A DNA stretch of 38,903 nt from Bigelowiella natans CCMP2755 (taxonomy: Eukaryota > Protista > Cercozoa), in assembly GCA_000320545.1 (NCBI GenBank), contig ADNK01001271.1, forward strand, positions 1 to 38,903. Direction: 5' to 3'. This document shows positions 3,152 to 34,770 of the stretch, piece after piece. Numbering within the stretch: the first letter of the stretch is position 1; each line of letters begins with the position of its first letter. The notes under the pieces are model-generated. The model had not been told where the DNA came from. It was given only the letters and a program-made list of their open reading frames with translations, and searched no databases. The position numbers and the translations under genes were made by a program.

Positions 3152-6100
3152 TCATACAGCGATGTTTACCCATTTGCGTCGCTTCGTCTCTTGCTCTTCT
3201 GTCGGAAGTTTCCGCTCGTGGCGATTGAGTGGGTGACTAAGTTCTATCTGCTCCATCGAGATTCTCGACGAGCTATCTATTCCAAAACCTGCTTGCTCAG
3301 GTATGCTATCGAGATGAGCGGAGGGTCTTGACGCTCCAACAAAAAGGTCATCGATTGCACCGCCGCCTCTCGTCGCCTGCGCATCCGAGCTCGATGACAG
3401 AGAGTGAAGGCTAATAGGTACGTTGGCCCTTGATAGCAAGTTCGTCGACGCGCTGAAGGTGACTTCGAAAACTTTCAAGGTGCGATGAGCTTGTCGCAGA
3501 GCACGCGCAACCTCCGTGTCATCGGAAACGTCCGTCTCCTCGATCTTCATTATGGTCCACCCACGCTTCACGCCCAACTGCTCTGCCTGGCCGCCTTTTT
3601 CAACGTATGTAACTGTAGCGTTTCGGTAATAAAATCCGACGCCTCCAGTCTCGAAGGAGAGCGACTCCGTGTACTTCCCAATGGAGGACAAACCCACTCC
3701 GCTGCCTCCTCTTCCGTCCACTCCATCATTCGATTCCTTTGGATCGAAGCAGTAGCTGCAGTGGCAAAAACACGAGGGCACGAACGGAGCGAAGATCAGC
3801 ATTTCAAGCATCAAAATTTGAAACACCCGAAGTATAAAGTCCCAACAGAATGAGAGAAGGGTGCCCTCCACCCACTGTTCATAGCAGTCCCTCATCTGCC
3901 AAGAAAGCGGGATCAGTAAGACTAAGCTGCCCATAACGACCACCACGGCGAACGCCACGCCGACGTAGTCTCTGCAGTTCCAACGGTGCGTGTCAATGTC
4001 ATCGTCTGAGAACGACCGCATGCTTGCTCTTCTCCCTGAAAGGGCCTGGGCATTCACCGCGTGTCCGGATTTCAAGGAATGCATGATGGCCTTTGAGCTC
4101 TTGACGCCGAGTTTGTCGTACACTTGGGGGAGTTGGGTTTCAAGACTTGTGCGGCTTGCCGCGGTCATTTTCTGAACGCTGGCCTGGAAATTAGCCCCTT
4201 GCTGGGCCTCCTTCTCCTCCTCAACTTCATCATCTTGGTGATTGCCGCCCTCCTCATCCACCCACTCTTCGTCTTCATGCTCCATGTCGCCGGCCTTTTC
4301 CACCACGGGGCAAATGAAAAACAACACCAGGTAAGTTGGGGGGAGGCGAATGAAGAATAGGGAAAAAGCTCATGCTCATATTTTTCAATGAAGCTATTTA
4401 CTACCTCAAATCCGCATTCTCCACAGCAGGTACCGGAGTCGCCAGTAAGATACGCGGTACAGAGTAGCAAGCACCCGCACATTTTGTGGCTGAAATCTGT
4501 GCTGAGACTCACATAAAAGGGCTTTGGGACTTTGCGAGAGAAAAGTCTGGAGTGCAAATATGGAACAGGGAAGGCGAGTAAGCAGGATACAAGCCCTGAT
4601 GCCAACGCAGAGGCGACAAACGGAAGCTCTTGGTCTTGCCTGTGAATCAATGCTGAAACCACCATCTGCAGGAACTGAACCACAGCAAAAACGGTGGAGC
4701 GCTTGGCGGAAGTGAGGAAGTCGCCGCGATGCCTGAACATAAATAGCCAGGGATGCATCCTTCGGAGGTCCCAGCAGGAGTGCTTGAGGAAGTTGCTCCA
4801 TGAACGCTTGCCTTTGGCGCGCAGCAGGCGCATGCGATTGAACTTCCTCCAGAAGGCCCGGGAATCCTTTGCAGCCTGATCGCTGTTCTTGAGGAGCTTG
4901 TCGTAGAACAAGGCGCCCAAGAAGAACAAGAGGCATGTAACTGCCATTGAGCAGCCGAACCACATGACAGGATTTTCCACCGTGTAGGCGTTTCTGTCTG
5001 AAATCCCTCGCTCGTCCACCGTGTTCACCTGGATGCGCACGTCCGTGCGCGCGTTAAAAGCAGTCAAGTGGTTTGATTCGCACAGCACTGCGCTCCCCGT
5101 ATCCCCGCGAAGCCTCACCCCAGCAGACGACCAGTTAGCCACGGTTGGGTTCCAGAAGCGGCACGCCGATGTGAAGGCACTCTCATCTCCATGCTCGGCT
5201 TTATTTCCCTTCGGTGTCTGAATGACAACGGGTTGACTAAGGTTCTGCACCGGCAGGCGCTGGCCCAGTTGGCGCAGCTCGATGACTACCAAACTGGTCG
5301 CTGTGGCGGCCTCAGGAGGATAAACGGTGTCATCGTTTACCGTGACCATCAGCGCGGAAAGAGGGTGCTGCGGGTTTCCAATAGGCGTCCCTGCAGAGCT
5401 AGCGTTTCCGGGGATCCGAAGAGTGGCATTGCTCAGCACCAAGGTTGTTCCCTCGCTTTGGAACTGGGAAGCGCCGACCAGATGCGACGCCAGGCTCACC
5501 CTTTTTGTCGAAACGGTGCGCGCAAACTCTCCAGTCACAGCGTCTGAGGTTTGGCCCTGGGCTAATCCAGTGAGGACGGACTCTACCCTCGGAGCTAGCG
5601 CTGCCCTTTCCTGCGCATCAGCGTCGACTGCTGCAACGTCGATGATGTTACTCACTGCGGAGAGCGTGCTAGAGACCATGGAGGACACGAAGGTATTGGC
5701 AGGGTTATTGACAAGGTTGGTGGCGATGTCGATAGCCACAGCGCGCGAATGGCTGTCCAGTTCGGCCTGGACCCCACTGTCAGCACTCGATCCGTGTCCT
5801 ACGGAGCTATCGCTCGAGTTGCTGAAAGCGGGGTTGGTAACGACACTCAGGAGGGACGACGGCAGGCCCACGTCTTCTTCAAATGAAGAGGACGACGATG
5901 GTATCGCTTGCAAGCTCTTGATGGAATTCAGCAGGTCTGCTCGGATCGCCCTCCTTTCAGCCAGGGAGCGGGTTTCCGTGCTCGTTCGGCCTCCATTGTT
6001 GAGATCCTGCGCCAGTCCCGTAACCAGTACTGAGAAGCGCTGCAGGTCTGTACAAACAACGTTGTTCAAACGCGGTATCAAATTATACGCATGCAATGCA

Positions 6101-6580
6101 TGTTGCGCGAGTTGCCCTTCTCCCCCCCCCCTCCCCCTCTCTCGCTTTCTCTCCTCTGATATCTAAGAAGAAGAACCTCCTTCGTCCAAAGTGGAGTTGA
6201 TCAACTGCTGGATACCGGTCGAATCAACTTGCGTAGCAGGGGCTATCTCCACGGTGAAGGCGAACATGCTCGAAGCTCCGAAGCTGTCCTCAATCCTTCC
6301 ACGAACTGCATTTACCACAGCAACCAAAAAATCATCATTTAGTTGAGACACCAGGGGGACTACGGAAGTGGCAATAGGTGTGGAGGTAAGCTGTGGTTAG
6401 GTGGTGGGAAGAAGAACGACGTTTAAGCGAAGTTCCATTGCTCGCCGCAGGCAAGAGCGTTCGGCAGAGGTTATTCTCCTTCTGGAAACACAGATCAAGA
6501 ATAACTTCCACACCAGCTATGCTTTGCTCCGCCTAGAGGATTAAAACCATTTTTTTCTGAGTGTGTGACTCCTCCCATCG

Positions 6581-6628
<48 letters not shown>

Positions 6629-6825
6629 CGTTGTTCTGTCTCACTTCTTTTATTCTCTAGAAATTAATAGAATTCGTTGCTTTATCTCTTATGCAATACA
6701 AATGTTATGGGAAAAGTAGATACCCATCGAAGATATCCACACACGCACTCTCTCTCACACACACACACACGCGCGCGCGCACTCATAGGCACACAAACAC
6801 GATATCTACGCGCTCAGATACGTGC

Positions 6826-6888
<63 letters not shown>

Positions 6889-9800
6889 CTAAGTGGGTAT
6901 GTTTGCATACTCTACCTGGAAACCATAGGTCAATGGAATATCTTCGTCAGTCCAGTCTTGACAAAAGAGAACGTAACTAGTGCTCAGGGCAACTCCTGTC
7001 GTAAACGGGGGTGATGCCACAGCTGACCCCGCCACCACTGATGATGGTGAGGAGGAAGAAGAAGATAAGTCTGGGGATCCGCCACAAGAGCCTAGAGAGG
7101 GCGGTGAGTTCGTGGAGAATGATATGGTTGCGCTTCCAGTCTGACCATACTTATCATGGGCCTGGACAGTGAAGATGAAGGACGCGGGAGATGCTAAGGT
7201 TCCTGGGGAAATCACGAGATTCGAAACGTTACGCGGCGACAGCAACCCCTCCACCCCGCCACCACCTGCTGGCCCCTCAATCAGGGGAGCAAAGTTCTCC
7301 GAGTCGCAGAACCATGAATATGACGTGATTGCGCTGCTGTGCTGTGTTGACGTTACCAAAGCGACGCGCGAACCTGAATTGAGGATCAACCGCTGCGTAC
7401 CGCCGCCACTGGACCCGTCTCCCTCGTACACCCGCGCACCCTGAACTCCCAAGTTGAGTATGGGGATCGGGAAGGTAGAGAGCGAGATCTCCTGGTACGC
7501 AGTGGAGATGCGGGAATAGTTGGCACTCGAGGGCCTCCCCGTCACGTTGAGCTGGACGATGAGGGATGTGAGGTTAAGGGAGTAAAGGAAACCACTAGTT
7601 ATATTTAGCTGGGGCCCTGATTCAAGAGTCCCAACAGGTAGTGTCAGGGCAAAGGCAGAGTTCGGAATAGAAAGCCGCCATTGGAATTGAAGCTCTTGCG
7701 TATCATTTCCAGCAGCAGTAGCAGGATCCCACGACTCACTGGCATCGAAGGTAACCAGCTCTTGGCTGAGCTCAAGGGCCGGTATTGACCGTCTGCCACC
7801 CCCGGATATCACCGCGACAACTGGATCAGCTTCGACTCGCACCAGAAACGTGGCGTTTCCTGTCCCCAGAACGATACCCGAGGTCACGTCCACCGCGGTC
7901 GCTGTGAGAGTGAACCCATAGACGCTGCCGACAGACAGACTGTATGGTGCCAAGCGGAGGTACACCGATGTTCGCTCCGGAATGGCTACAGCTTCCGTCG
8001 AGAGCTCGGAGGCGAAGATCTGCGCTGAGCCTAGATTCCTCGAGCTCGGAAGGGCTTGCTTCCATGTGCCTCTAGTCATCACACCTGAGCGCCCGGTTGA
8101 GTTGCCGGCACACTGCGGGACGACGATCTGCGCGCGTATCGACAGGGTGTTCTGCACCTTGGCCCGGAGCTGACCGGCATAAGGGCGGAGAATAATGGGG
8201 ACGAAATCTGAGCGCTTCACCACGGTGAAGTTGGCCGTGGAGGTGTGGTTTAGCCAGTTTGTCATCGTCAGAGCGAAGGTGTGGCTCCCCAACGACGCGT
8301 TCGCCGATGGTATCTCCATACGCATGCCCTGCAGGTTCGTGATGTATGCCTTCGCTGCAGGGCTGAGCGTAGACAGGTTTCCGGGGATATAACTCCATGA
8401 AATACGGGTGAAATCGCGCCCTAAAGCGCCTTGGCTCTGGCCTGCATCTAGCGTGATGCTATCACACGTCCCCACAGCATCTGAACCATCAAGAACGACC
8501 TTAGTCTGAATCACATCGAGAGGAATCCCGACGGTAGCGTTGCCCTCCAGGCCACGGAAACGAACTGAGATCGCGCTCCCCGGCTGAACGGTGGCCGAAG
8601 AGCCCAGGGCGATTGTGACTTGTCTAGAATCGGACCAGGTGCAGGAATACCCGGTTCCCAGCTGCTGGGCGGAGTTTCCAGAGAGAAGCTCAGCGCACTC
8701 GAAGGCAGGGGAAAGAGCAGTGGAGACGGAGAAGCCGAGTTTTATTCGACTGCAGTCGCTGGAGAACACAGCGGACAGCAAGCCGATGTTGGTCATGGTC
8801 GGTGAGCTGGACGAGGGCGAGCAAGTTGGCTCTGCGCTAGGACTTTTGGAAGGCGAAAATGAAAATGAAGCCATCATCGACGGGGAGAGCGAGGGCAAGG
8901 AGGTGGTTCCCTGCGGTATCGGCGTGTTCGTAGGGCTGAGCGAGGATGGCGATAGAGATGATGGACAAATACTCGGACTTAACGATGGAGATCGGGAAGG
9001 CATCTGCGTGGGAGTTATGGACGGGGAAAGGCTGGGGGCTATACTCGGAGATGAAGTTAGATCTGATGGAAATCGAGAAGGCATCTGCGTGGGAGTTATG
9101 GACGGCGAAAGGCTGGGAGCTATACTCGGAGATGACGATGGAGATCGGGAGGGGCTACAGCTCGGTGCTCCAGATGGTGTGGCAGTCGGGCTGCTCGAAG
9201 GGAGTGACGATGGCGACAGGGTTGGTGAGCGAGAAGGCGCTGCAGTGGGACTTGTTGAAGGGCATGAAGACGGGGTCGTGGTTGGTGAATGGGAAGGGCT
9301 AGCACTGGGAGCTTGGGTAGGAGCCGTAGTTGGGATCTGGGATGGACACAGAGATGGCATTTGAGAGGGGCCAGAAGTAGGGGCTAGAGTCGGTGCTACA
9401 GTCGGGGTCTTCGAAGGGGTACTTGATGGCGACTGGGAAGGGGTAGCGGTTGGAGCCTTGCTCGGAGACACCGTACTGTTTCACATTAGAGAATAAGTGT
9501 TCAGACAATTCAATATTTAAATCTTCCGAGGGCTGCTTTTGATTCAAGACGACCTGGGCGCGAAGGTGACTGGGCTTTGTGTTGGAGCAGATGTAGATCG
9601 CCATGTACCAGCAGCAACAGCAAGAATTGTGCTTGTATCGCATGTTGGAAAGGCGAATATCCGTCCATCTCCACCGGTCACTATGCTGTTATATCGGCCT
9701 CCAATTTGGATGGTGGAACTGAAATTTTGTACCTTGAGCACACACACAAGCACACACGCATGTGAGCAAATCCAAGTGCCAATAACTTTCAGCAATTCAC

Positions 9801-13361: not shown

Positions 13362-13956
13362 TCATCTTACAGTAATATAATTTGCGCTCACACCGGCCGA
13401 TCCGCATGCAACGTAATCAATTTTTTCGAACTAATGCGCAGTGATGATGCTTGGCCTCGATGGATGATGGTAGTTTAGCGTCACAATGTTATTGCGTGTC
13501 CAATACAAATATACATGTGATATATCACACGGCTAATGCAAACCGACTGCAACACAGCATGGGTACCATCTACACCTTATCGTCGGACATAGCAACCACG
13601 GACATGCTAGCATGTTGGCTTGGCACGTATATATAGCAGAGCATGTGGACAGGGCAAGTAATACAGATGATAAGAATACGAATGTTATCGCAATAATGGC
13701 ACTTGACTAATAAACATAAACAGATGAGACATTCTGTATCGTGCGCCTAGAGCGTGTGAACGCATTATCACAAATGATTTTAAGCAAAGAATTGAACAGA
13801 TTAGACACATGCTAGAATCAGCATAGCCATAAAGCGGTGGCTACGTTGGGAGTTGCGGCGTACTCTTAGCCATCAACAACACTCTAAACCACATGCAATT
13901 ATGCAGTGTGATGCCTTTACACTGTAGCATTGGGAGGCTTCCTGAGGAGTAGACAC

Positions 13957-18769: not shown

Positions 18770-20940
18770 TATGCGGAAACCCTCACCATGGAGAACGTGG
18801 AAGGCTGTGAGCGACTCGAGAGGGGGGACGGCTCCCAACACTGCCAGCAGGTGAACATGATAGCTATTCGTCAGCGTCCTTTTCACCCATGCGTGGAATT
18901 AAATAATGTTCAGTGGAGGAAGCTTGTATCCTAATTTCGATGCCTCAATCGGAACTGTGCCCCTCCGATCAATTCGGCCTCCAGCTAGAGCCGTAACCCC
19001 TGGAGTAGGAATGGGGATGGGAGTGGTAATAAGTTTCTTAGACCTATTCTTCCAGCTTTTATTACAAAATGGATGTCTTCCAGGGTATTGTCGATTCGCG
19101 AAAAGGATTAGGAGTCGTCGGATCTAGCGCCCCTTCGAGGCTAAAGCCCAAATATCGGAAAAGTAACAGGGTAAGATATCTCCGTTCCGAAGCTAATGAC
19201 TCACTGCAAGCTATGTTTTTTGAGAAATTCTCGATATAATCAGTCGATCTCGAACAAACGACCGGTATTCCGGGCTGGTACCGCTCAGACACGATTCAGT
19301 AAGGATTTAAGCCCGATTTGGAAGTGATATTCCTAATATTTACTTTTTGCCCGAAGGTCGAAGCGGCGTCTCAAGAAACTTTTCTGCACCACGTCCGGCC
19401 TTTGGCAGACAATACGTGCAGGTTCAGCAATAGTATATAGTCAAACAATAATATTGAAGAATTTTTAAGATTGTCCCGAGACACTGCGAATTTTGGAGAA
19501 AGACAGTAATAATTTTTTTTGATTTGTTGCTGAATCATGCCGGCTTCATTTCGATTTTTTCTGCACAGCTTCTTAATGTTCTCTGTATAACTTACTTCTT
19601 TCATTACTTTGCACTAGGAGCCTTTGGAAGAATCTAAATCCAATGTAAAGAGACCAACGCCTCAAATGAAGTATGCACCTATATGATTCAAAAAGAAGCA
19701 AACGGGTTTTCAGATTTAATATTTGGCAGACCGTTACGCCTGGAGGGCTTTGAATGGCTGATAGAAAATCATCCTTCTGTCCATCGTCTGGAGAGAGATT
19801 CGAAGATTTCCACTGGGTTTACACATGTTTATTGTTTCTGACCACGGGAATGATCAGGGGAGGGAGAAAACTAAGACAGGATGGTGGTTTTTTTTTCAAG
19901 CTAGATGTAATATAGTTTGAAAGAAAGCAACTCTTGAGCCTGCGACGTTAACTCGTCGAAGTGAAACTTGGCGTTGTTGCTAGCATTTAACTCCTTGGTT
20001 ATTGCATTACGTATTCAATCAAGATATTCCTACATATTTTTTATTCTACCCATTTTCATAGACGCAGGGTGAGTTCTCGAAGGACCCAGAGACCGGCAAC
20101 AGTCTTTAGCAGCTCCTCCAAATCCGCTCATATTCTTGAAGAAAATGAGAACGATTCAGAGCATAGACGTAGGCTGAGCTCTCGAAGGACTCAGAGACCG
20201 GCCACAGTCTTTAGCAGTTCCCCCAAATCCGCTCATATTCTAGAAGAAAATGAAAACGATTCAGAGCTTAACTTTAACGAGGAGGTGACTAAACTGACGT
20301 AAGTATGAAGTAGTGTGGATTTTGATATCTGGGCATTTATAGGAATGTTTCTCCGGAAGGAGCGGTGCGCTAAGCTTCAGACGAAACGACGAAAGGTCTC
20401 GTCAGAGCATCAATGATTTTCTGTCTGTATTCTCAATGTAATGTTCCTGATTTTAAATCTTCTGATTTGAAACAGAAAGCTGCAAATCTCTCAGAAGCGT
20501 AACCGTCGCGTGCAGTCTGCCTCCATTAGGAGAGTGCCACCTTCCCACCACCATCATCACCGTATCCGGCCTCCATCTAGGCAACGACCACCTCCTCAGG
20601 CATTACACTTGAACCTGTTCAACGTTTCCATGGACCTTCCAGGTGCCAGCATTCTGTTGTTGTGCTTTCGCTGTTCTATGTTGACGTGTATACGTGTGGT
20701 CGCATTGTCTTGTTTTCCTTCTTTTCTAGACACCCCGAAGCATGCAAGGGTTGGAGCAGAAGACGGTACACGAGGATCCAATACACGAGCTGGAGACGGT
20801 ACATTTTCAAGGGAAAGAATTCGGAACAGCCACGTGACGCGAATGGGCAGATCGTCGAAGACTGTAAAAAAGGCGTTCATGCCCACAAGCTAGGCGTTGG
20901 CCACCACGCGTGTAGTGTATCCTATATATGCAATACATAG
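18770..20940 (+). CDS. Hypothetical multi-exon protein, unknown function; both ends uncertain
   Basis: Series of short open segments bounded by GT/AG (MRKPSPWRTW.., GGSLYPNFDAS.., EPLEESKS.., PLRLEGFEWLIENH.., SSRRTQRPATVFSSS twice). No family recognised. Confidence 0.4.
19482..19594 (+). repeat. Dispersed repeat family B, uninterrupted (probably intronic) copy
   Basis: cactgcgaattttggagaaagac..gatttgttgc..catgccggcttcatttcgattttttctgcacagct is shared with 21511-21725. Confidence 0.9.
20057..20266 (+). repeat. Tandem duplication, 2 x 105 nt, in frame
   Basis: catagacg...gattcagag occurs twice with scattered substitutions; a 35-aa repeat. Confidence 0.95.
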
Positions 20941-21409
20941 TACGTATACACACATTTGTCTAAAGTCACCACCTATTATTATATCAAGAAATGGCACCAT
21001 GCGCTGCAATCGCAGTTCTAATTATGTAGCAGGAGCTTCTATTGCCACCCGTGTTTACACGTGCTCATTACTAATGTATAAGATTGCGGTGGAACATAAC
21101 ACTAGAATATCTAGATATTTTCGTGAGTGTTAGCTGCGATGCATGTAGCATTCCTAAGTTGAGCTGGCATATAACTCATGTTGACTAACTGCTCATGTGT
21201 AGTCTAAATCGCATGGCGCGTGTACGACTGCGCTGTATAGCTACTAGCTGCACTGTTCTGTGTGGCGTGCTCTAATACGTACGTGATGTCGTATACGCAT
21301 GTATGTGGTTGTACGCGTCCATCGATCATGCAAGTATTGTCATTAGAGCGTTGCATGCGTGCGTACACCATGCAACAATAAATCGCCGCACGCTTCATTT
21401 TATGCACTT

Positions 21410-21484
21410 TATAGGGACTTAAAGTCCCTATATATAACTTATTAGTCCCTACACGTATCGTATATGGACTTATTAGTCCCTATA
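21410..21484. repeat. Palindromic GGGACTT/AGTCCCTA unit array
   Basis: TATAGGGACTT-A-AAGTCCCTATA inverted repeat plus two ACTTATTAGTCCCTA units. Confidence 0.85.
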
Positions 21485-21510
21485 TCATCTAGTCATCGGT
21501 ACACACGCAG

Positions 21511-21725
21511 CACTGCGAATTTTGGAGAAAGACATATATGAGACGGATGTAATGAACAAATTAAATTTTTTCAATGGTCATCCTGATGTAGCTGTGCAAT
21601 GCAGAGAAAGACATATACAGCAATAACTTTTTTTGATTTGTTGCGATGCTGGACCATGCTAGCATGCCGGCTTCATTTCGATTTTTTCTGCACAGCTCTA
21701 TTGTGTTCTCTGTGTATATAACTCA
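21511..21725 (+). mobile_element. Repeat family B copy interrupted by a family A fragment (21539-21603) flanked by a 14-nt direct repeat
   Basis: gagaaagacatata occurs at 21525-21538 and 21604-21617. The paralog at 19482-19594 lacks the insert. Confidence 0.8.
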
Positions 21726-22026
21726 TATGGCATTGCTTGCTTGCTTGCATGCACGTGTGCTTGATTGCTCTACACTCTAGCAATGCACAGGAGCAGGTGT
21801 CATCGTTGCTGAGATGCTGGCTAGCTGGCATCCCATTCTATTCATCGTGACCAACAATAGTGCAAAGTGCTCATGTGTCACAGCACCCATGCAATGCTCC
21901 AAAATTTCGGAATCGAAACGACTGTGAACGTGTGAACGAAATAATTGAACGACATGCATGTCATGAATGAGGAACACCGTGGATGTCTATGTTGGACATC
22001 AAATTGCTCTCGTACCATGAGCATCC

Positions 22027-22905
22027 TTAGCGACGTGTGGATTTTGAAAATTCGACGCGGAGATACTCCCTTCCAAATTTCATCCCGTTCGTCTCACGCA
22101 TTGCATCCTCAGCATCCCTTTCGTCGTCATATTCAACGAAAGCATACGCTGGAGGGCGTGATGGTGTCTTGAGATCAATCCGCATAATTTTTCCAAATTT
22201 CGCATAGATCTCGTCGATTTCTCTCTCACGGACATCCATAGGAAGATTTCCGATGAAGATTTTACGACTAGGAGCACCTCGGGGTGAACGAGAACCTCCA
22301 CGACCACCACCACGTGGACCACCCCTAAGAGGAGGACGAGGGCGTGCAATGTTGCAAGTAATACGACGTCCATCAAGACGAGAATCATGCATGCCGTCAA
22401 CAGCCTCTTCTGCATCCCGCTTGCTTTCGAAGGTGATGAACGCAAAGCCGCGGGGCTCGCCGCGTTTGTCGCAAGGAACGAAAACATCAGTGATGTTCCC
22501 ATACTTCTCGAATCTATCACGGAGATCATCCTTGTGAGTACGGAAGTCTAGATTTCCCACATAGAGTTTACGTCCATAGGTTTCATCCCCATACTCTTCA
22601 GCCCTCTTATTTTCCTGGGAAGGGGATCGGGACCTATCGCGGTCACCACCTCCTCGGCCTCTACCTCGGTTAGATCGGGAGCGTGATCGCGAGCGAGAGC
22701 GACTGCGGCTACCGCCACGGGAGGGCGATCGCGATCGCGAATCATCCCTCTTACGCCTATCATCTTTGTCATCTTTGTCATCGTCCCGGCGGTCATCCTT
22801 ATCGTCTCGGCGATCGTCGTCCTTCTGGTCGTTGTCGCGATCCTCCTTGGGATCCTCCGTCTTCACGTCTTCTGGTTCCTCCTTTCTGTTCTCGTCGTCT
22901 GACAT
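22027..22905 (-). CDS. SR-family splicing factor / RNA-binding protein: acidic N-terminus, RS tract, two RRMs; 5'-UTR intron at 22906-22971
   Basis: RRM1 KLYVGNL..RGFAFITF; RRM2 KIFIGNLP..PPAYAFVEY..YLRVEF; SRSRSRSRSR tract. The ATG directly follows a ..caacag acceptor. Confidence 0.92.
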   Translation of the reverse strand: MSDDENRKEEPEDVKTEDPKEDRDNDQKDDDRRDDKDDRRDDDKDDKDDRRKRDDSRSRSPSRGGSRSRSRSRSRSRSNRGRGRGGGDRDRSRSPSQENKRAEEYGDETYGRKLYVGNLDFRTHKDDLRDRFEKYGNITDVFVPCDKRGEPRGFAFITFESKRDAEEAVDGMHDSRLDGRRITCNIARPRPPLRGGPRGGGRGGSRSPRGAPSRKIFIGNLPMDVREREIDEIYAKFGKIMRIDLKTPSRPPAYAFVEYDDERDAEDAMRETNGMKFGREYLRVEFSKSTRR

Positions 22906-23667
22906 CTGTTGAAATAGCATTATGGGATGTAAGTTTTCGAGATTATGTGAGACATTTTTCACCATTCATACTTAGGTCAAAAGAAGCAGCTTTAAATACA
23001 GATACAGCTTCAAAAAGCGCGGAAGCTTCAAAGCGGAAACGATACTAGAAGCTTTAGCATGCACAGAGCTCTTTGGCGGGAGCTAAAAGCTTCTTCTCTC
23101 TTGCATGCACACTCTTTGAGCAGGAGCTTCTAAAGCTTCTTTTCTCTTGCAGGATAACAGGCAGCAGTTGATGCAGAAACTTCTGTTCTTCCAGAAGGAA
23201 GAAGAAGTAAAAAGCTTGCCGAGGAAGAGCAAATTCCTCGCAAAATGCTTCAATCTTCGAGAAAACGCAAGCACGGGCCCACGGAACTTCCAAGGCAGCA
23301 GGCATCATCTTTATTTTTTGATCCTCTAGCTTCTATCCTTGTAAATGTGATGAAACCCAAGAACAATCCCGTTTGGGCTTCGTGAATGATATCAACATGC
23401 GTGTGAGGCTTGCCTTATCGCGGCGGGTTGAAATGTGATAAACGTAAGCGTTATAAATTAAAAATTGCCTTCTCTTCTTGAAATAATATCATATATTTAT
23501 CTAAGACGACAACATATATATGCTAATTATTTTCCGAATTATCATACTCAAGGAAAAAGTATTTACAGAATTGAGGCATTAGAGGATCTAATTTCTTTTT
23601 GCGGACTTAAATATTTTATTTTCAGATTAGTCTTTAAGGACAGATGGATGAGTATTCATGAAATGAT

Positions 23668-31324: not shown

Positions 31325-31914
31325 GAGAATGTGGAAGAAGAAAGAAGCATTTAATTGAAGATTTCCAAAAAATCTTTTCTGGGCACGACGGTAGAGGATC
31401 TGATAGTTCTAAAAGCGGCTAAGCCTGCATCGGGGAAGATGTTGTCCCGTGGAGCGTATCTGAAATGAGCAGTGTGGATTTTAGCGCACAGCGCAAACAA
31501 CGAATTTAGAGTGTCCGTTCTTGTTCTGCTGAGCTATTAATTGTCGTGTATACTCGTTGCAACTTTCTTCCATCGTTTCGTTTACTTGTGCGCGACGCAA
31601 AGCCACCTATTTGCTGCTGTTCTGGTATTTATTTGCCCATTATAAGCGCATCGTATTCGCAGCACAACATGTGAAGAGCAATTGCAACATGTTTTGACGA
31701 CACATATTGTTGCACAATGCACATTCTAGCATTTACTGTTAGACTTGCTCATATGAATACACACAGTGATGCGCGACGACGAAACGAAAAGATTGACTTG
31801 CGATGAGAAGCAATATAGGAAACACGCACTGCTACGCGAAATGCGCGACATTCGCAAGACCGAAACAACATGCATTTGATTGCATGAAACACATCATAGC
31901 GGAGACCAACAGAT

Positions 31915-32011: not shown

Positions 32012-32251
32012 GGAAATGCTGACAGTAAACTTGAAAAAGCAAACTTGCATGGTAATATGACAATGACCTGCCTAGATCGGTATGCTAGCATGTATGATGC
32101 ATGTATGATGAAGCCAGCTTTTCTAGATTTGTACGGTCAAAGAGGCGTAAACTGTATGCGAGGTCATGGCCTCATAGCTACTACATCTGAACACCTTCTG
32201 GGTTCGTTTCACTAAAAACCAAGACTTTGCTCGGAAAGCAGCTTCGATTCC

Positions 32252-33491
32252 TCACTTTGAACCCGCCGCATTGCCGGAGGATAGGATGTTGGATAGCTTC
32301 CGTATGTCTACCTAAAGAGAAGGGGAGACGACAAGGAGAAGACCAAGAAAGAGCACGAACGAGCGGAATAAGAGAAAGCGTATTATCAGCAGGTCTAGAG
32401 GTGTTAAGAGAATCCTTCAATAAATTCTCTTTCAATGACTGTCCATTTTCCTCTCGTTTTATCATCTTTTTTCGCATTCCCAGAGCCCTCTTTCAGCGGT
32501 CTCGTCGAGCACCGTATTTTTTAAAGCATATATAACAAATAGCTGATACCTTCCGTTTTACTCCTGCGCTCTTTGCATGCCCTTCGATTGCCTAATGATG
32601 ATGGTCAAGATAAAGACGATGACGATGTGTCACTGATACTGTGTCTACTAATACAGAGCAGGGCGCTGCCGGTTCTTCTTGCTTTTTGTTGGTGAGGGAT
32701 TGTCGTTGTTCTCATTTCACCTCTTTGACATCTTCCTCCGTGGTGATAATGGGGTTTGTGGAAAGAACACCTGTCGTCGATGACGTGATGATTAGGATAA
32801 TGATTATGATTATGTTGATGATGATGCCGGCGCTGATGGCGGAAATGATGATTAGGCCGATCATGATGACAGCAAAAGAGAAGTCGAGAGAACAAGCGAT
32901 GGTAAGAGAGATAGAATTAAAAAGGGAAAGAGAGGGAGAGAGGGAGAGAGAGAGAGGGGGGGGGGAGGGGGGGGGAGGGGGGGATTCAATTAGTTACGAA
33001 CCTACTGCCAATGCCAGCCCACATCGTCCTCCGCCTGAAGAACGAGGTAGATAACAAAGAGGGAGGGAGGGGAGGACAAAGCGCGATACACCATACATCA
33101 GAGGGGAATTTTCGCCACCATTTCTGCGATCATCAAGCGCCAAGCTGTGCGAATTCCTCGCAGGATTAGCGCACATCAACGCTACTACTCGCATGTATTG
33201 ATTGCCTCTGCTGCTTCTTCAACACTTCTACTCAAAATAATCATGACTCTCGTTCGTTGTGTGGACAGGTAAATCATCGCGCACGCTTTACCGCCAGAAC
33301 AATGGACGACGACTTTCTCCTCCGAAGCCTAAGGAGGGGGGGGGGAGGGGCGGGGGTGGACGAGGACGATCTTCAGCAACGCGATGTGATAGTGTGAAGA
33401 TCACGTTGCTGCCACTGATGGTTGTTGATGATGAGCATGACGGTGATGATGATGATGATAAGATATGATGATGATGATGATGATAATGATA

Positions 33492-34659: not shown

Positions 34660-34770
34660 GGAGGGATTTCCTGAGGGATTTCGAAACCCGAAGATTTATT
34701 TCGAACATCCTTATTTGTGATTTCATAGGATTTCCAGGATTTCCTAGGATTTCCTAGGATTTCCAGATTT
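34660..34770. promoter_or_regulatory. GGATTTCC(TA) tandem motif in the divergent intergenic region
   Basis: ggatttccaggatttcctaggatttcctaggatttccagattt plus upstream gggatttcc and gggatttcg. Regulatory role is inferred from position. Confidence 0.4.

Follow-up and report, generated by a model that had tools for sequence, protein, structure and literature searches.

Genome-wide CTAG scars in Bigelowiella natans and a candidate parent DNA transposon with CT...AG ends

Excision footprints of transposons are normally rare and heterogeneous, so that past excision is nearly invisible in genomes. Footprints that consist of both target-site duplications (TSDs) and bases of the element's ends have been established for Mariner/Stowaway elements and for Sleeping Beauty (PMC4561436, PMC8151067), and footprints of the Tc1/mariner type are explained by cleavage inside the element followed by non-homologous end joining (PMC8151067, PMC4561436). 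By comparison, piggyBac has TTAA as its target and excises without a footprint (PMC8151067), and PIF/Harbinger elements have a 3-bp TSD and excise precisely (PMC4561436). The scar analyzed here, a CTAG core between two copies of a 4-mer (X-CTAG-X), resembles the footprints of Tc1/mariner and Stowaway elements, e.g., the CAG that Sleeping Beauty leaves between TA TSDs or the footprints of Osmar, in that both TSDs would be kept around terminal bases of an element. However, the TSD here is a variable 4-mer and not TA, two bases per end would be retained in one invariant form, the candidate element is about 7.5 kb long and there are more than 30,000 scars. In the literature that we searched, no description of a CTAG scar was found.

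Our starting point was a window of 38,903 nucleotides, the whole stretch of B. natans CCMP2755 DNA under analysis (contig ADNK01001271.1, positions 1 to 38,903). Exact 4-bp duplications flank 8 of its 107 CTAGs, while Markov shuffles contain a mean of 0.56 and a maximum of 3. An earlier note on this DNA had listed eight exact cases with duplications of 4-5 bp, and all of them are located where it had placed them. Seven are 4-bp cases, with X being ATGT (489-500), CATG (13603-13614, beyond the 3' end of a minus-strand RhoGEF ORF), ATAT (21107-21118), TCAT (21485-21496), CATG (21655-21666), CTGG (21817-21828) and CATT (31722-31733). The other (511-524) is a 5-bp variant within a dispersed repeat, which we call repeat A, in otherwise non-repetitive DNA, and relatives of this site have the 5-mer only once. 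An exact scar with X = AGGT (32391-32402) was absent from that list. One-mismatch candidates are found at 2873-2884 (with converging ORFs on either side, and not individually significant), 21098-21109 (overlapping the scar at 21107-21118), 21773-21784 and 32081-32092. The densest part of the window, 21098-21828, contains seven CTAGs, four of them exact scars and two of them one-mismatch cases, and this cluster lies directly beyond the 3' end of an RRM (SR-like) ORF on the minus strand (22027-22965).

Other features of the window can be mentioned briefly. A 10-bp tandem repeat containing CTAG (34735-34770) could be mistaken for a scar with a 6-bp duplication, which it is not. About 110 bp are present in two tandem copies at 20060-20270. 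On the minus strand, the ORFs at 3152-9471 encode a long stalk rich in Ser and Pro along with PDZ and GPS domains, and are polycystin- or adhesion-receptor-like.

It is important to use a realistic background when judging such counts. The earlier note had assumed a chance of 1/256 per CTAG, but any one core actually has a background of about 0.8%; even so, CTAG is the top non-microsatellite core in the window (P = 3e-6). The note had also proposed comparison with shuffles and with other cores, and by both measures the enrichment is present in the window and in 200 kb of contig C3601. In the 200 kb of C3601, 71 of 568 CTAGs have an exact duplication (65 of these are non-periodic), against a mean of 3.2 and a maximum of 8 in shuffles, and the enrichment of CTAG among all 256 cores has P~1e-51; no other core or duplication length comes near CTAG with 4 bp. 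The word CATT-CTAG-CATT occurs 1,117 times genome-wide, and its reversed control word 6 times. Exact duplications are found at 16% of all CTAGs versus about 1% for other cores, and at 32% of CTAGs inside scar islands, which are themselves defined by these scars. Of the proposed duplication length of 4-5 bp, the 4-bp part holds, while 5-bp duplications are at most rare (1.3% versus 0-0.7% in controls, and mostly within microsatellites). One-mismatch cases are not above background in the window (7 of 107 CTAGs), but exceed it in the larger sample (10.6% versus 5.7%). The note was right that the flank varies: there are 67 different X among 162 scars, which rules out a single repeat copied around. 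The genome assembly comprises 91.4 Mb in 3,736 contigs. Extrapolated from the density of one contig, it would contain about 32,000 exact scars, and about 49,000 scars once aged ones are counted. The CTAG scar is thus a real genome-wide feature, with about 30,000 copies or more.

Comparison with paralogous sequences that contain X once reveals the scar as an 8-bp insertion. The example in the window is imperfect: the paralog (19461-19610, plus strand) of 21565-21740 does have a single CATG near 19536, as the note had observed, but about five further bases differ just upstream. Cleaner pairs of filled and empty sites are found in locus L016, where the site corresponding to one scar is empty in 15 copies of repeat A. 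Among aligned copies of this repeat, there are four 8-bp insertions, and scars account for three of them. Repeat A itself is represented in the window by a 71-bp piece (21534-21604, plus strand), the end of a TA-flanked MITE-like repeat; here and at L003:1498-2114, it makes up the long inverted ends of units that measure 350-850 bp and are situated in TA runs. A 1.1-kb query gave 1,302 first-look candidates genome-wide. This very abundant, MITE-like repeat hosts scars but does not generate them. Its ends read GAG, which predicts a GATC core, and GATC is at background.

The duplicated 4-mer has a palindromic bias: its first base is C (0.51) or A (0.32), and its last base is G (0.51) or T (0.32). 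Such a bias fits the expectation for a dimeric transposase. Scars are strongly clustered, as 73% of the gaps between them are below 500 bp, versus 16% expected, and 4 overlapping pairs occur among the first 100 CATT-CTAG-CATT sites listed. They avoid long ORFs, which contain 3 of 71 scars versus 73 of 568 CTAGs. The ORFs of the window suggest a location in tail-to-tail spacers; a crude test of gene orientation around scar islands by splice motifs gave a signal that was too noisy. The scars have also aged. There is an excess of one-mismatch cases, the mean pairwise mismatch is 0.11, and the aged cores CCAG and CTGG, which are the products expected from TpA hypermutation, are at 6.5-7%. Scar islands overlap TpA-depleted DNA.

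As one of two possible sources, the earlier note had named a cut-and-paste element that has CT...AG termini and flanking duplications, and it had suggested looking for one with TIRs. Such a family is present. When about 300 kb were scanned for inverted ends bordered by a duplication, one convincing CT-ended element was found. Its type copy is 855 bp long (C3601:131787-132641, equivalent to L034:1787-2641), with a 24-bp TIR starting CTTGG and with CCAG on both sides. The element ends are 5'-CT...AG-3', with TG...CA two bases further in. The 24-bp TIR has 27 matches in the genome, including facing pairs. Measured from end pair to end pair, long copies span 7.5, 7.5, 8.5 and 13 kb (C2208:62005-69480, C3106:25042-32536, C222:19806-28273 and C274:5148-18343, respectively), and there are internal-deletion derivatives of 855 bp and 1,151 bp. 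In the 855-bp copy, 394 bases from the left of longer copies are joined to 460 bases from their right, and interior sequence is common to six genomic copies. The TSDs, which were read from short pattern matches with four flank bases per end, are CATG (C2996), ACAT (C2208), CACG (C222), CGAG (C274) and CCAG (C3601). On C3106, the TSD ACGG was predicted from the left end and subsequently confirmed. Six of the seven end pairs thus have a 4-bp TSD (P~1e-9 by cross-contig pairing); a 130-bp pair on C3423 has no matching TSD. In its TIRs, its fixed 4-bp TSD and its dispersed long copies with derivatives, the family resembles a cut-and-paste DNA transposon. It is a low-copy family of about 15-20 copies.

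The 15 element targets have a mean of 2.0 bits under the scar-derived matrix versus -1.2 bits in island DNA. Conditioning on the search pattern raises this background to -0.4 bits, and none of 200,000 simulations was as high as the observed mean. The targets are somewhat richer in C..G than the average scar (1.1 bits). The 855-bp copy has lost nearly all of its TpA dinucleotides, with one TpA in 855 bp. This lone TpA sits in a scar at L034:2486-2497, and the scar is therefore probably younger than the TpA erasure of the copy. Beside the element, at C3601:127732-131655 (L033/L034), there is an inverted repeat with 1.27-kb arms that are 99.8% identical, which reflects a recent duplication or an assembly fold-back. 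TIR-like variants were seen at C716:41301, C3730:131335, and C2360:8093 and 14978, including one facing pair 6.9 kb apart. These are possibly sister families, with a match count that is at control level when two mismatches are allowed.

A further copy comes from outside this assembly. An ENA metagenome contig (L041) contains a left end of the element that has diverged to about 75-80% identity. This end is inserted in repeat A, close to a position that is scarred in L016, and the sequence runs on into the element interior. The same contig carries its own CTAG scar at positions 6-17. The mark therefore exists outside this assembly, which speaks against an assembly artefact.

The candidate parent does not fit readily into a described superfamily. 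Sola1/2, Ginger, Kolobok, Chapaev and Academ have a 4-bp TSD, TIRs and a length of several kilobases, as does the candidate parent, but the termini of these superfamilies (GRG, TGT, RR, CAC, YR) do not fit CT...AG. The TG...CA ends of Ginger and other integrase-type elements are present two bases inside; in the candidate parent, however, CT and AG separate the TSD from TG...CA, which would otherwise lie directly against it. With piggyBac the candidate shares a 4-bp TSD and a pyrimidine-pyrimidine start, but TTAA is absent among both the element TSDs and the scar X. PIF/Harbinger elements, which are present in this genome, have a palindromic target bias like that of the scars, but the TSD differs (3 versus 4 bp). 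For Tc1/mariner, piggyBac, Harbinger and Ginger alike, a defining feature is missing from the candidate.

For the transposase, 15 Pfam models of transposases or integrases had no match inside the four paired long copies; several of the controls were silent too, and the readable copy is hypermutated. DDE_3 and DDE_1 matched only elsewhere and not inside the degraded element copies, and none of 15 genome matches to PF13359 (DDE_Tnp_4) lies within a copy. The model applied for piggyBac, PF13843, had no match, nor did its control match anywhere. There was no match to rve within the four paired long copies, nor to the Mutator, DUF6589, DUF7869 and Transposase_21 models inside copies. Proxy Pfam models for Sola, Chapaev, Academ and Kolobok were blank or matched elsewhere, again with silent controls. 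HMMER with the left-end frame returned only P0001, probably a spurious prediction on a metagenome contig. The Atlas, homologue searches and scans of JGI metagenome or viral data were all blank. Separately, the genome contains a family of about 20 ORFs of about 1,489 aa that are near-identical and carry an integrase; this family is probably a young LTR retrotransposon. A LINE-like remnant of a reverse transcriptase at L013:3-1499 lacks TpA and stop codons and has a weak match to RVT_1.

Our best explanation is that the scars are excision footprints of this family or of a sister family with CT...AG ends, to which we assign a probability of roughly 0.8 on the basis of sequence comparison. The link between the CTAG scar and this candidate parent is proposed here and appears to be new. 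Removing the interior from X-CT[element]AG-X gives X-CTAG-X exactly, such that the scar core equals the first two and last two bases of the element. Scars and element agree in the length of the duplication, in the terminal bases and in target bias, and the host repeat of one diverged element copy also contains scars. As for the mechanism, the non-transferred strands would be cut 2 nt inside the element, a geometry like that of Tc1/mariner, leaving each flank with a 2-nt 3' overhang. End joining would then keep and fill both overhangs to give X-CT+AG-X, and polymerase-mu-like fill-in across unpaired 3' overhangs would yield such a product. We regard the odds of this exact 2+2 fill-in chemistry as about even. 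Each hop would leave one scar and add no copy, so 15-20 copies could produce tens of thousands of scars. In rough numbers from a published mutation rate, the mean age of a scar would be about 1.6e8 generations, and a rate of about 1.5e-4 events per genome and generation, kept up for about 3e8 generations, would be enough. In mutation-accumulation lines (bioRxiv 10.64898/2026.01.13.699255), none of 21 new indels is a scar; as only about 0.5 would be expected, this absence carries no weight.

Some observations fit less easily. With about 2,000 scars for every copy of the element, the ratio is extreme and counts against the model. Among the sites compared, none was encountered in the empty, filled and scarred states alike. 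Known excision footprints are usually heterogeneous, and the variants of 3 or 4 nt that retention of one end would leave (CAG, CTG, CTTG, CAAG, CTTAG) are here at background or close to it, which makes for an unusually uniform outcome. One-end footprints were rejected on this ground. An element that simply targets CTAG and makes no TSD was also rejected, as X is duplicated in 6 of 7 element pairs versus 12-32% of CTAG sites.

Another, unseen transposon could have CTAG palindromes as its ends and be cut 4 nt inside, so that complementary overhangs religate; the family that we found would then be only a relative. The invariant core would be explained with no need for polymerase fill-in, and one could have escaped a search of 300 kb, given that autonomous families are rare (about one copy per 5-6 Mb). 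TIR-like variants with two mismatches do exist, although their match count is at control level. However, no CTAG-ended element was found outside scar clusters in about 300 kb, and the family at hand already fits the TSD length, terminal dinucleotides and target bias, so we consider such a parent improbable. Slightly less probable still is that full insertion never took place, and that 4-nt staggered breaks, made by an abortive transposase or a host nuclease, were repaired with a fixed 4-nt linker. The core uniformity, the huge ratio of scars to elements, the strong clustering and the overlapping pairs, which would be tandem re-hits, are all compatible with this. However, a repair process that inserts an invariant CTAG is not known to us, and it would be left to coincidence that the linker is what results from joining the two ends of an element whose TSD length and target bias are those of the scars. 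The earlier note had offered both transposon excision and fixed-linker repair; given the element family, the former is supported and the latter is no longer needed.

That the scars are an assembly or library artefact, a product of slippage or a by-product of TpA hypermutation is largely refuted, and we give it very little weight. The overlap of scar islands with TpA-depleted DNA is a point in its favor. Hypermutation acts on the same kind of DNA and has erased the readable 855-bp copy. However, the scar on the metagenome contig, the signs of ageing and the avoidance of long ORFs argue against an artefact. TpA hypermutation in B. natans is a substitution process, reported to produce substitutions only (bioRxiv 10.64898/2026.01.13.699255), and the main text of that report makes no mention of CTAG or footprints.

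If the scars are excision footprints, then the kind of footprint is already known from other transposons, and it is its uniformity and number that are unusual: there is one fixed mark every 2-3 kb, and spacers have gained roughly 0.25-0.4 Mb. Such scars would allow cut-and-paste events to be counted, mapped and dated genome-wide. Target choice could be measured from tens of thousands of sites, and jumps could be ordered against the alga's TpA-erasing defence. The candidate parent turns this into a testable claim, as the four loci of 7.5-13 kb should hold an unclassified transposase. We also propose, much more tentatively and as an idea that we think is rather unlikely, that the parent represents an undescribed group of transposases, with CT-TG...CA-AG ends, a 4-bp TSD, aim at spacers past the 3' ends of genes and an invariant 2+2 footprint. 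If this were true, the B. natans genome would hold a datable record, with 30,000-50,000 entries, of the jumps of an element that barely multiplies.
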